Shown here: positions 29,301-32,300 of the stretch, one piece after another
How positions within the stretch are numbered: position 1 is the stretch's first letter
Layout: each line of letters begins with the position of its first letter
Assembly: GCA_002269645.1 (NCBI GenBank)
Contig: NIVC01000132.1
Location: 186,001-250,000 of the forward strand
DNA length: 64,000 nucleotides
From: Macrostomum lignano
Lineage: Eukaryota
Direction of reading: 5' to 3'
The notes under the pieces: model-generated
Databases searched by the model: none
What the model was told of the DNA's origin: nothing
What the model saw: only the letters and a program-made list of their open reading frames with translations
Position numbers and translations under genes: made by a program

Positions 29301-32300
29301 CCATGTCGGCCACGCCGAACAGCAGCGAGCCGTCCGCACGAAGCGACAGGGCGTACGCCGCCGACCTCGCCTCGTCTGCATCATTTGCAGCATCACTTCC
29401 CGGTGTAGTAGTCCTTGGCGTGGCCGCCGTCCGGACCCAGGACCAGTCCAGGTGCGGGCAGAGCCGCCGGTGCAGCTCGGCGGCTTGGTCGCGGCCCAGC
29501 GCGGACAGCAGCACCGGCTGGTGGCCGCACCTCGCTAGCGCGTCGGCGATGTTGCGCCCGACGCCGCCGCAGGTGATCACGACCCGGCCAGAGTGAGTGG
29601 CCTCCGTTGGGAAGCCGCTGTCCGCCGTCGCTGCCGCGTCCTTCAGGCGGGCCGTCAAGTCGAGATTGCAGCCGCCGATGACCACCGCTCGACCGCTCGT
29701 TCGCCGCGGTGCCGCCCGGCTGCTGACGCCGGCGTCGGCGAAGCTTTTTGGACGGCGATGGGTTTGCGGAGCGTGAGAAATTACACTTCGTGGGGTAATT
29801 CTTCTTGGCAATTCCTACGAGCTATAACCGTGACTGAGCATCCAGATAATTTCTTCAGAAAATCCCTGGAAATTTCCGCATCCTCAGATTTCGTCATCGC
29901 TTAGTAGGAATCTCATTCCTGCAAATTTAATCTCACCATAGAATCTCATCCCTGCAAATTTAATCTAACCATAGAATCTCATCCCTGCAAATTTAATCTC
30001 ACCATAGAATCTCATCTCTGGAAGTAGATCTCACTACAAATCTCATCCCTGGAAATGCATCTCACCATAGAATCTCATCCCTGGAAATGCTTCTCACTAT
30101 AGAATCTCATCCCTGGAAATGCATCTCACAATAGAATCTCATCTCTGAAAGTGCATCTCACCATAGAATCTCATCCCTGGAAATGCATCTCACTATAGAA
30201 TCTCATCCCTGGAAATGCATCTCACCATAGAATCTCATCTCTGAAAGTGGATCTCACTATAGAATCTCATCCCTGGAAATGCATCTCACTATAGAATCTC
30301 ATCCCTGGAAATGCATCTCACTATAGAATCTCATCCCTGGAAATTTATCTCACCATAGAATCTAATTCCTGGAAATTTATCTCACCATAGAATCTCATCC
30401 CTGGAAATGTGTCTCACTAAAAGAATCTCATCTCTGGAAGTGGATCTCACCATAGGATCTCATCCCTGGAAATGTATCTCCCTGTGAGAATCTCACCCCT
30501 AGAAATGTATCTCACTATAGAATCTCACCCCTGGAAATGTATCTCCCTATGAGAATCTCACCCCTAGAAATGTATCTCACTATAGAATCTCATCCCTGAA
30601 AGTTTATCTCACTATAGAATCTCAACTCTCTCATTCTTCTCATAAAATATGCATAAAAGTACCCCGTAAAGAGATTCAACTCTGCTTTTCTCTCGAGATT
30701 CCCCTTGAGATTTCCATCTCTGTCCAGAGAACAATTCATGCTACTGGGGCAAGTTTAACACAAACAACTGGGAACTGGAAATCTCTGATCCACAATGTAT
30801 TTGAGTCTTTCAATAACTGATTTTGTTCCATTGGGGGTCGGTCATGGATGCAGTGGAGGGCAGGACAAACGCACAGTTCAACACAGTTTTACTTCTTGCC
30901 GGTCGCCGCCGCCGCGTCCTGCAGTTCGCTGAACGCCTTGGCGATCTGAGCGCCAACGTCTGCGTTTCGCTTCACCAGCGCCACATTGGCGCGCAGGCTG
31001 GCGCCGTCCGTCAGGCGGGCGATTCGGTCCAGCAAAAACGGCGTGATCGCCCGGCCACGAATGCCCAACCGTCCGGCTTCGTCCAGAGCGTCCCGGATGG
31101 CGGCGTCGACTGTCGAGCTGAACTCGCTGAACTCCCGGGCGATCGGCACCGCCAGCAAGAAGCCCGGGCCGTCCAGAGAGCGAACGCCTGCCAGCACGCG
31201 GGCGCATTCGGCGACACTGTGCAGGGTGCACGGCGATTTGTGACCGCTGCTGGGCGTGTAGAATGCCGGGAACTCCACCTCCTCTTTCTTGCCTGGCTGT
31301 TTTGCGTCGTCGCCTAGCAACAGGGTAGCAACGCCGACGCCTTGCGTTTCTAATGCCTCCAGTGTGCGGCCGACGTCCAGGAAGGCTTTGACCCCGGCGC
31401 ATACCGTCATGATTGGTGTGCGGCCCAGCTGGACCAGGTCCGCGCTAACGTCCATGCTGTCCTGACCGTGCCTGCGTTGATGGGTGCGGAGCTGAGCTGC
31501 TGAACGGCTCCTTGAGCACCCCTCACCTGTGCACACACAGCCATAGCGGCTCCCTGAGCACCCCTCACCTGTGCACACACAGCCATAGCGGCTCCCTGAG
31601 CACCCCTCACCTGTGCACACACAGCCATAGCGGCTCCTTGAGCACCCCTCACCTGTGCACACACAGCCATAGCGGCTCCTTGAGCACCCCTCACCTGTGC
31701 ACTCCGCCAATGCCACCAGTGACAAAGACCGGCACGCCAGCCAGTCTGGCAGCCACCAAGGTGGCGCTGACGGTGGTGCCACCGTTGAGTCGCCTGGCCA
31801 TCGCCGTCGGCAGGTCTCTAGTTGAGCACTTGATTGCGTAATCATCTCCGCCCAGAGCGGCAATCTCAGCTTGGCTCAGCCCGACAACCAGCCTGCCGGC
31901 CAGCATCCCGACGGTGGCCGGCACCGCGCCTCTCGACCGGACAATCCGTTCGGCCTCCAGCGCCGTGTCTACGTTAATTGGCCGCGGCATTCCGCTGGTG
32001 AAGATGGTCGACTCCAGGGCGACAACGGCGCCGCCAGCCGAGACGGCCGCCCGGACCTCCTCGGCGACACGCAGGCCACCGCGGCCCAGCTTGGATAGCA
32101 TGGCTGTCGGAGTTTTAGCTTCAGTGACAGGCCCTCTTATTCCAGGGGCGCTTAGAGCGGCTTTGCAGTTTTACAGCTTTGCGTTTTGCAGCACCGGCTT
32201 CTTATCGGAAATGGTTCGCTAAACGCAGGGCTTTATTGGCAGCCCTCATTAAGCACCTCTTTATCCAGCCAGCTCTCTAACCTTCGCGCGCCTTCGTGCC

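Follow-up and report, generated by a model that had tools for sequence, protein, structure and literature searches.

A single spliced gene very probably encodes the PsuG-kinase fusion protein at a Macrostomum lignano locus with an in-frame stop between the two domains

RESULTS

Structure of the locus

The window, that is, the whole stretch of 64,000 nucleotides analyzed here, corresponds to NIVC01000132.1:186001-250000, so that a scaffold position equals the window coordinate plus 186000. It showed 100% identity over 15,517 bases with the locus carrying PAA89889.1 (Macrostomum lignano Mlig_3_7, NIVC01000132.1), and the flatworm origin that an earlier note had deduced from the letters alone was thus correct. 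The locus is BOX15_Mlig000863g1 (Mlig000863.g1), which is already annotated in GenBank and is an already known fusion gene. PAA89889.1 is a 714-aa fusion of PsuG with a PfkB-family kinase, and it was recovered residue for residue when three exons of the minus strand (32101-31695, 31471-30893, and 29743-28585) were concatenated and translated. The GenBank coding sequence (CDS) splices 30893 to 29743, a junction that our model reproduced exactly; it is a canonical GT-AG junction that preserves the frame and lets the two domains be read as one uninterrupted ORF. The features are as follows (window coordinates; a slash marks a splice boundary).

31695-32101, minus strand: exon 1, with the ATG at 32101-32099 and the end GTG CAC AG/gtgagg (phase 2); supplies the N-terminal half of PsuG (PF04227 positions 1-122, E=1.4e-45)
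31472-31694, minus strand: intron 1, 223 bp, GTGAGG...CGCAG, phase 2
31505-31702, minus strand: 42-bp tandem array in intron 1, which repeats the exon/intron junction
30893-31471, minus strand: exon 2, ending GGC AAG AA/gtaaaa inside codon 326; supplies the C-terminal half of PsuG, with the predicted catalytic lysine, K164 (PF04227 positions 125-290, E=1.7e-52)
30889-30891, minus strand: in-frame TAA, bases +2 to +4 of the GTAAAA donor
29744-30892, minus strand: intron 2, 1149 bp, GTAAAA...CCAAAAAG, phase 2, in the inter-domain linker
29908-30624, minus strand: tandem array in intron 2, 22 copies (TRF, 22.2) of a 32-bp unit, 87% matches
29744-29817, minus strand: contested segment, with a TAG at 29817-29815, a hypothetical phase-0 acceptor (exon start 29814) and 23 open codons
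28585-29743, minus strand: exon 3, starting aaaaag/C TTC GCC (which completes codon AAC, N326) and ending with the TGA at 28587-28585; encodes the remaining linker and a PfkB-family (pseudouridine kinase-like) domain with the motifs GGVGRN and SVSGAGD

The GC content of the intron 2 segments was 0.39 to 0.48, versus 0.69 in the CDS. The TRF consensus of the 32-bp unit is GAATCTCATCCCTGGAAATGCATCTCACTATA on the plus strand, and within the window the array was found only in this intron. Read on the gene strand, every unit contains one GTGAG and one TTTCCAG/G, and the repeats hold 22 matches to YTNCAG and 22 to GT[GA]AG. The gene is mildly unusual in one feature only, namely, that its inter-domain linker holds a lineage-specific intron filled with tandem repeats.

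The fusion is present at three paralogous loci, g1 (PAA89889.1), g2 (PAA69349.1) and g3 (PAA64236.1), each annotated with an intact CDS of 714 aa and all with the same donor and acceptor sites for intron 2. The paralogs differ from g1 in the tandem-repeat copy number of both introns and in a few substitutions; the three copies of intron 1 measure 223, 305 and 559 bp, and intron 2 measures 1149 bp in g1, 988 bp in g2 and 1408 bp in g3. The contested segment showed 0 substitutions in 71 nt and a single 3-bp AAG deletion or slip in the intron tail of g3, despite which the annotated g3 protein is still 714 aa long. Since the copies are ∼95 to 99% identical, their comparison is too close to separate coding from non-coding sequence in this segment. 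The only M. lignano members of the protein clusters were the three GenBank proteins; protein searches that included run assemblies returned no M. lignano protein that was partial or limited to the kinase or to PsuG, and a text search of the literature gave no mention of Mlig000863.

The two domains and their relatives

Exons 1 and 2 together gave a full-length Pfam match to PF04227 (Indigoidine_A; positions 1-122 and 125-290 of 291). Residues E30, K91, D143, K164 and N298, which we take to have catalytic roles in PsuG, are invariant in an alignment of nine metazoan fusions, and K164 aligns with the residue that is Lys in PDB 8k05 and Ala in its variant, 8k06. Residues 8-319 matched 8k05 (E∼1e-76 to 3.7e-77) and the Escherichia coli structure 4gij (E∼3.5e-64 to 5.2e-65), and homology to stand-alone PsuG stops at residue 319. 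For its part, the kinase open reading frame (ORF) matched PF00294 in Pfam (E=1e-24, profile positions 5-292 of 302), and its PfkB motifs GGVGRN and SVSGAGD are invariant columns of the alignment. The best NCBIfam match was the pseudouridine kinase family NF007355, albeit a weak one (44 bits versus a cut-off of 540), and the best PDB matches were the pseudouridine kinases 7vkp (E=2.6e-9) and 7c1x (E=5e-7). Pseudouridine is the putative substrate of the kinase on the grounds of its orthology with fused proteins listed in databases as pseudouridine metabolizing, and both enzymatic activities are predicted from homology.

The earlier note held that eukaryotic PsuG and PsuK usually form one fused protein, and the best 120 homologues (fish, amphibians, birds, echinoderms, molluscs, an annelid, a nemertean and a barnacle) agreed with it, all of them combining PF04227 and PF00294. 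Nearly all are ∼660 to 770 aa long, and in the tapeworm, too, the homologue is fused. As judged by these protein comparisons, metazoans typically have the two domains fused, and this architecture is ancestral in Metazoa. The metazoan and fungal proteins of the C1861.05 type (‘pseudouridine-metabolizing bifunctional protein’; zebrafish zgc:136858) have the same order, PF04227 followed by PF00294. Like the M. lignano protein, they are ∼700 aa long, and they share with it 36 to 43% identity over 90 to 99% of the length, a comparable linker length and the invariant motif columns. The linker of the spliced model, ∼26 residues, falls within the range of the homologues. On the other hand, M. lignano lacks the N-terminal extension of 20 to 50 residues found in most C1861.05-type homologues and has an 11-residue insertion in PsuG with respect to them. 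It also carries an intron inside the linker, whereas the fusions of Owenia, Rodentolepis nana and scallop are continuously coding across it: the entire Owenia gene is one exon, and a single exon spans the linker in R. nana and scallop. The absence of the intron from these three other lophotrochozoan genes leaves its position without comparative support.

The order of the genes in the E. coli operon is kinase and then glycosidase. The M. lignano fusion differs from this arrangement in having PsuG first; furthermore, the bacterial two-gene operon psuK-psuG (E. coli yeiC-yeiN) encodes the same two enzyme families as separate polypeptides, and the plant kinase and glycosidase (PDB 7c1x and 8k05) are separate polypeptides as well, whereas in M. 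lignano there is one polypeptide.

Stop codons and splice phases at the junction

As described in the earlier note, the PsuG frame ends in A-T-G-K-K-TAA, with the TAA at 30891-30889 of the minus strand overlapping a phase-2 donor (AA/GTAAAA, GT at 30892-30891, exon end 30893). The kinase (PfkB) frame indeed extends upstream only as far as an in-frame TAG (29817-29815), which gives a phase-0 exon start at 29814 (tcgtag/GAA TTG CCA), and it contains no in-frame ATG from 29814 to the VVIGGCNLD motif, the first in-frame Met lying far downstream, in GVADMDIHG. The ‘weaker AAG/CAG sites’ that had been placed at ∼29690-29806 proved to be the phase-2 AGs at 29803, 29800, 29785, 29743, 29722, 29719 and 29695; all AGs in the kinase open stretch are phase 2 except that at 29814. 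The annotated intron 2 joins the very AA/GTAAAA donor singled out in that note to one of its ‘weaker AAG’ acceptors, 29743.

A phase-2 GTRA donor necessarily reads NNG-TRA, that is, a stop, so the TAA that follows PsuG is automatic and no sign of separate cistrons. Intron 1 of the same gene shows the identical effect, with an in-frame TGA directly after its donor (CAC AG/G TGA GG). Because the TAA lies inside the GTAAAA donor, it would be read only when intron 2 is retained. In the same way, wherever a TAG stands in frame, the base after its AG is necessarily the first of a codon, and the phase-0 look of 29814 is therefore automatic too. An open extension of 24 codons upstream of a real acceptor would be expected by chance in ∼1 of 3 cases, according to the rough estimate (61/64)^24. 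The two coincidences at the junction, the stop at the donor and the TAG at the acceptor, are no more than chance.

Coding composition of the contested segment and choice of acceptor

The contested segment contains a C/T-rich tract, a branch-like CTCAC site and a 42-nt zone free of AG. The 23 codons from 29814 to 29746 had a GC3 of 6/23, compared to 0.818 in the CDS; none of the 692 CDS windows of 23 codons was as low, the CDS minimum being 11/23. Their codon log-likelihood was -16.3 bits, versus a CDS minimum of +8. The composition of these codons looks non-coding, and the segment as a whole, the TAG and the open codons after it, is probably the 3′ end of intron 2.

Composition turns from non-coding to coding at acceptor 29743, which is preceded by the 42-nt AG-free, C/T-rich stretch. 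In a change-point analysis, this acceptor gave the best coding/non-coding split among the phase-2 AGs, exceeding the CAGs at 29722 and 29719 by ∼16 bits. These two CAGs look better as phase-2 sites but were rejected as the main acceptor, because their use would cost 20 nt that score as strongly coding-like (+16 bits) and that the annotated protein includes. Splice sites were judged by published M. lignano motifs, and both sites of intron 2 depart from the consensus (donor GTAAA versus GT[G/A]AG; acceptor AAG versus CAG), so that splicing could be inefficient.

Annotation of the gene and alternative transcripts

The GenBank annotation of Mlig_3_7 was built from StringTie/TACO transcripts assembled from RNA-seq, and its TBONE step cuts transcriptional units at mapped spliced-leader (SL) and poly(A) peaks before ORFs are called (PMC5730564). 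This SL- and poly(A)-aware annotation left the gene uncut in all three copies, and from it we infer that the gene is expressed mainly as the fused mRNA. Besides the off-consensus splice sites and the lack of comparative support for the intron position, two observations count against the fusion model. One is that the pipeline joins some transcripts that are separated by repetitive gaps (PMC5730564), intron 2 being a repetitive sequence itself. Merging is, however, restricted to cases in which the downstream transcript has no ORF (PMC5730564), and it would not create a frame-preserving GT-AG junction. The other observation is the presence of ATTAAA at 29997, 29964 and 29931, in the last three repeat units; the copy at 29931 lies ∼115 nt upstream of the AG at 29814, a spacing that would suit an operon too.

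The main rival to the fusion is the gene fission proposed in the earlier note, in which poly(A) addition after PsuG would be accompanied by trans-splicing of the SL at 29814 and the AUG of the SL would start a stand-alone kinase, M-ELPRRITP... The premise that flatworm SLs end in AUG holds for this species: the published M. lignano SL is CGGTCTCTTACTGCGAAGACTCAATTTATTGCATG (PMC8629364), whose 3′-terminal stretch, …CTCAATTTATTGCATG, ends in ATG (PMC8629364), and the AUG of flatworm SLs is a potential start codon according to Cheng et al. (2006), as cited in PMC12582326. Trans-splicing affects ∼30% of M. lignano genes, ∼15% of genes are in operons, and repeat-adjusted intergenic distances peak near 100 bp (PMC8629364); in addition, annotations of parasitic flatworms are known to contain erroneous chimeric models in which operonic genes are fused (PMC12582326). 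Locally, 29814 is the only phase-0 AG of the open stretch, and the nearest ATTAAA is suitably placed. The PsuG-kinase interval, ∼1.1 kb raw and ∼0.4 kb without repeats, compares with the 1-kb threshold of the M. lignano operon study, below which the repeat-free figure lies. Nevertheless, compared with the SL-resolved operons of the same organism (Wudarski 2017; Ustyantsev and Berezikov 2021), the sequence proxies tested for PsuG and the kinase do not fit, and the published annotation has one gene. The 29814 site, TCGTAG, does not match the M. lignano SL acceptor motif [T/C]TNCAG (PMC8629364) and has other AGs 7 and 19 nt upstream, while intron 2 itself holds 22 better matches, so a motif match means little here. 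No AATAAA occurs in 30892-29744, where only the variant ATTAAA is found, within repeat units. The kinase cistron would have no ATG of its own before its motifs, and its sole route to translation would be the SL AUG at 29814 followed by codons of non-coding appearance (GC3 6/23; codon score, -16 bits; 0/692 CDS windows that low). A kinase-only protein starting MELPRR was absent from the 5.8 billion clustered proteins searched, the pipeline made no cut at any of the three loci and gave a GT-AG junction that keeps the frame, the phase-0 property of the TAG is automatic, and the fusion appears to be ancestral in Metazoa. Taken as a whole, the fission is very improbable. A search of the window for the 3′ part of the SL, allowing ≤3 mismatches, gave one match with 2 mismatches (50113-50128), which is at chance level (50 of 100 shuffles); it was rejected as an SL RNA gene, since the sequence there is AT-rich and immediately precedes a coding stretch that resembles a K+ channel.

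A dual output, in which the fusion mRNA is the main form and the weak sites of intron 2 allow substantial retention and hence a PsuG-only protein (325 aa, ...ATGKK), is unlikely, although less so than the fission. The GTAAAA donor and the AAAAAG acceptor are both off the published consensus, stand-alone PsuG works in bacteria and plants (PDB 4gij and 8k05), and, as homology ends at residue 319, the PsuG-only product would be a complete domain. A retained last intron may evade nonsense-mediated decay; intron 2 is the last intron, and its retention might therefore let the mRNA escape. Against this, the immediate stop is common to every phase-2 GTRA intron, intron 1 included, and is no sign of design, and GenBank holds no PsuG-only model, albeit alternative forms were filtered out before submission. 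Somewhat less probable still is a combination in which the fusion mRNA would be accompanied by minor forms, namely, a PsuG-only mRNA (through retention or cleavage at an ATTAAA unit) and an SL-capped kinase-only mRNA (AUG at 29814); nothing found at this locus points to it. Finally, an in-frame isoform joining the phase-0 donor CTG/gtgaag (exon end 30976) to 29814, with a different linker, deserves almost no credence. The two sites are phase compatible and the donor has a GTGA core, but the product would lose the conserved C-terminal helix of PsuG, including the invariant N305 and A306, together with the last ∼18 residues aligned to the solved PsuG structures, it would gain a segment of non-coding composition, and it is annotated in none of the copies.

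DISCUSSION

The locus is very probably one three-exon, minus-strand gene that yields a single 714-aa bifunctional PsuG-kinase protein by ordinary cis-splicing. Of the two readings put forward in the earlier note, the fusion is supported by the 30893-29743 junction of the GenBank CDS, the same model at three paralogs and the metazoan norm. The dicistronic pre-mRNA, which would have re-created an operon, is not supported, in view of the non-coding composition of the added codons, the motif misfit, the lack of AATAAA and a pipeline that left all copies uncut.

In the proposed protein, the N-terminal domain would be a pseudouridine-5′-phosphate glycosidase (PsuG, Indigoidine_A fold) and the C-terminal domain a PfkB-family kinase of the pseudouridine-kinase type, joined by cis-splicing of the 1149-bp phase-2 intron (30892-29744), most of which is the 32-bp tandem array. 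The predicted enzyme would convert pseudouridine to pseudouridine 5′-phosphate, whose C-C glycosidic bond would then be cleaved to give uracil and ribose 5-phosphate.

The junction holds a caution for the reading of raw eukaryotic sequence: a stop that ‘cleanly’ ends a domain may sit inside a phase-2 GTRA donor, and an in-frame TAG always resembles a phase-0 acceptor; neither of them shows that cistrons are separate. At this locus, GC3 as a local measure of codon composition sufficed to distinguish coding from non-coding sequence without RNA data. If minor PsuG-only and SL-capped kinase-only mRNAs did accompany the fusion mRNA, the gene would be a fusion part-way to fission into an operon, a rare case partly resolved by trans-splicing. 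With the fused protein as the preferred reading, M. lignano very probably keeps the ancestral metazoan bifunctional enzyme of pseudouridine catabolism, in three near-identical copies.

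Gene identity and exon structure

The locus is an ordinary three-exon fusion gene that was annotated already. On the minus strand between 32101 and 28585, three GC-rich open stretches alternated with AT-richer, repeat-filled sequence. The 291 positions of Pfam PF04227 (Indigoidine_A), the profile for the PsuG fold, were shared between the first two, one half each (1-122, E=1.4e-45; 125-290, E=1.7e-52), and the third matched PF00294 (PfkB kinases, E=1e-24). With the kinase ORF as the protein query, the search retrieved two 714-aa proteins from Macrostomum lignano at 99-100% identity, each containing PF04227 plus PF00294. 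The contig coding for one of them, PAA89889.1 (BOX15_Mlig000863g1, here g1), agreed with the window over 15,517 bases at 100% identity. Thus, the window is NIVC01000132.1:186001-250000 of assembly Mlig_3_7, and the guess in the earlier note that the organism is a flatworm was right. The joined exons translated residue for residue to PAA89889.1.

Exon-intron structure of the PsuG-PsuK gene
31695-32101, minus strand: exon 1, part of the exact translation to PAA89889.1
31694-31472, minus strand: intron 1, GTGAGG...CGCAG, phase 2
30893-31471, minus strand: exon 2, part of the exact translation to PAA89889.1
30892-29744, minus strand: intron 2, GTAAAA...CCAAAAAG, phase 2
28585-29743, minus strand: exon 3, part of the exact translation to PAA89889.1

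The paralogous loci g2 (PAA69349.1) and g3 (PAA64236.1) showed the same splice sites, each giving a 714-aa protein. Intron lengths in g1, g2 and g3 were 223, 305 and 559 bp for intron 1 and 1149, 988 and 1408 bp for intron 2, the spread being one of tandem-repeat copy number.

The stop codon and the TAG follow from splice phase

The features that had suggested two separate genes were present as described. The PsuG frame ended in ...ATGKK-TAA (TAA at 30891-30889), overlapping the AA|GTAAAA donor (GT at 30892-30891, exon end at 30893, phase 2). The kinase frame lacked an in-frame ATG ahead of its first motif and was shut upstream by an in-frame TAG at 29817-29815 (tcgtag|GAA TTG CCA, exon start 29814, phase 0); apart from 29814, all AGs after the TAG in the open stretch were phase 2 (29803, 29800, 29785, 29743, 29722, 29719 and 29695). 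A phase-2 intron with a GTAA or GTGA donor necessarily yields an in-frame NNG-TAA or NNG-TGA, and intron 1 of g1 likewise reads into a stop (CAC AG|G TGA GG). Similarly, any in-frame TAG places an AG before a first codon position and is a "phase-0 acceptor" by definition. Since both follow from splice phase, neither the clean stop after PsuG nor the TAG acceptor is a signal. The 24-codon open extension 5' of the true acceptor, with a chance of ∼0.3 (rough estimate, (61/64)^24), is unremarkable.

Comparison with other fusions

Both domains were present in every one of the 120 best homologues of the 714-aa protein, nearly all of them within ∼660-770 aa; the sources were fish, amphibians, birds, echinoderms and molluscs, plus one annelid, one nemertean and one barnacle. 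The homologue of the tapeworm Rodentolepis nana was fused too. The spliced M. lignano protein aligned end to end with metazoan fusions, with a typical linker length. Homology to stand-alone PsuG structures stopped at residue 319, and exon 2 ends in codon 326, with the linker intron just after. In contrast, the Owenia fusiformis gene is intronless, its fusion coding sequence being continuous, that of R. nana is interrupted just once, by an intron at residue 153, and in the scallop Mizuhopecten yessoensis a single exon (residues 311-372) covers the linker. The M. lignano linker intron is thus, in this small sample, lineage specific.

Intron counts vary widely among these lophotrochozoans (0 in Owenia, 1 in R. 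nana, ∼17 in scallop and 2 in M. lignano). By alignment, neither M. lignano intron fell exactly where an exon ends in R. nana or the scallop, the nearest scallop boundary lying ∼6 residues from intron 1 (mapped approximately by tblastn). Relative to other metazoan fusions, the g1 protein lacks the N-terminal extension of 20-50 residues (residues 1-15) and carries an 11-residue insertion in the PsuG domain (residues ∼187-200).

Fusion versus alternative products

The earlier note had left open a spliced fusion or a nested operon whose kinase takes its start codon from a spliced leader (SL). Its fusion branch was right, donor and class of acceptor included, the annotated coding sequence (CDS) being reproduced exactly, and we consider it very probable that the plain fusion is the main product. 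The Mlig_3_7 GenBank annotation is not ab initio, having been built from RNA-seq StringTie/TACO assemblies and a de novo transcriptome (PMC5730564). Before ORFs are called, the TBONE pipeline splits transcriptional units wherever mapped SL reads or poly(A) (T-fill) reads form a peak, and polycistronic precursors, almost 7% of units, were split by its authors (PMC5730564). PsuG-PsuK was left undivided in g1, g2 and g3 alike, and its CDS spans a canonical, frame-preserving junction. Transcript support for the fusion is second-hand, coming through this published annotation. The same pipeline merges some transcripts over repetitive gaps, under a rule for ORF-less downstream transcripts (PMC5730564), but that rule would not yield a precise GT-AG junction. 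No transcript-derived proteins of the Mlig000863 gene were found in a large protein collection, nor any mention of it in literature text and supplements.

An operon as the main mode, with an SL AUG joined at 29814, is very unlikely, since every proxy tested gave it no support. It needs the 23 codons of 29814-29746 to be translated, yet their GC3 was 6/23, against 0.818 in the annotated CDS, where 0 of 692 windows of 23 codons fell below 11/23 (binomial P of ∼9e-9). Their codon-usage log-likelihood was -16.3 bits (CDS minimum, +8.0; median, +34), whereas GC3 in the first 23 codons past 29743 was 19/23. A change-point scan placed the coding start between 29775 and 29742 and, among phase-2 AGs, preferred 29743 over 29785, 29800 and 29803; the CAG acceptors at 29722 and 29719 were ∼16 bits worse. 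A 42-nt C/T-rich, AG-free stretch precedes the 29743 AG, with CTCAC ∼31 nt upstream, an arrangement typical of 3' splice sites. Ahead of the AG at 29814, other AGs occur at distances of 7 and 19 nt. Over this segment (29817-29744), the three copies were nearly identical and their comparison had no discriminating power. For M. lignano, the motifs on record are GT[G/A]AG for cis donors, CAG for cis acceptors and [T/C]TNCAG for SL acceptors, and the lengths of operon spacers, once adjusted for repeats, have their peak close to 100 bp (PMC8629364). TCGTAG at 29814 mismatches the SL motif, and AATAAA is absent from the PsuG stop to the kinase. The sole feature that would also suit an operon, and that may be in use, was ATTAAA, found in the final three units of the array (29997, 29964 and 29931), the last ∼115 nt before 29814. 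Intron 2 also holds 22 perfect SL-motif and 22 GT[GA]AG matches, which carry little weight because each 32-bp repeat unit has GTGAG and TTTCCAG|G. Because the cis sites of intron 2 are subconsensus (donor GTAAA, acceptor AAG), some retention is conceivable; it would give PsuG plus one lysine, and an appreciable PsuG-only form of this kind is unlikely. An alternative 30976^29814 isoform is hardly to be expected at all.

Repeats and neighbors in the window

A 42-bp tandem array (31505-31702, 4.7 copies, 98% matches) spans the exon 1/intron 1 junction on the minus strand, so that the donor CACAG|GTGAGG occurs five times in g1, twice in g2 and three times in g3. The first of these is the annotated donor, directly followed by an in-frame TGA; use of later copies would therefore truncate the protein. 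The 32-bp array, found in the window only at 29908-30624, has donor-like GTGAG and acceptor-like TTTCCAG|G in its unit, the latter fitting the published SL acceptor motif perfectly. Of the two kinds of site, g1 has 22 each, g2 17/17 and g3 30/28. A period of ∼20 bp characterizes a third array (∼26830-27580), downstream of the PsuG-PsuK 3' end, which gave a ladder of BLAST self-matches and varies in copy number among the paralogous loci.

The PsuG-PsuK gene sits antisense within a plus-strand gene (∼26333-38101) with a 643-aa product and ODF2_N/ODF2_C Pfam matches at the paralogous locus. It appears to be nested in an intron of ∼5.9 kb, since coiled-coil-like open stretches (26333-26683 and 32573-32746) lie on either side. 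Long (TAGT)n and (CTGT)n tracts, tetranucleotide microsatellites with ∼88-90 copies each (32817-33175, 33709-34060 and ∼37600-39000), produce spurious long ORFs in both orientations, made up of TDRQ or LSVC repeats. On the minus strand at ∼49900-50060, a coding-like stretch, ...TMSTVGYGDISPRT..., carries a potassium-channel selectivity-filter signature (single frame, by eye) directly downstream of AT-rich sequence with a chance-level SL-like match. An SL search of the window returned a single match, at chance level.

Predicted enzyme function

The PsuG part matched solved pseudouridine-5'-phosphate glycosidases (8k05, E=3.7e-77; Escherichia coli 4gij, E=5.2e-65), and the lysine-to-alanine position of the variant structure 8k06 aligned with K164. 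For the kinase part, the best structural and NCBIfam matches were pseudouridine kinases, albeit weak and below the NCBIfam bacterial equivalog cutoff; the PfkB motifs GGVGRN and SGAGD are kept. In the expected pathway, pseudouridine is converted to pseudouridine 5'-phosphate and then to uracil and ribose 5-phosphate. By homology, the M. lignano PsuG-PsuK protein is predicted to act in that pathway.
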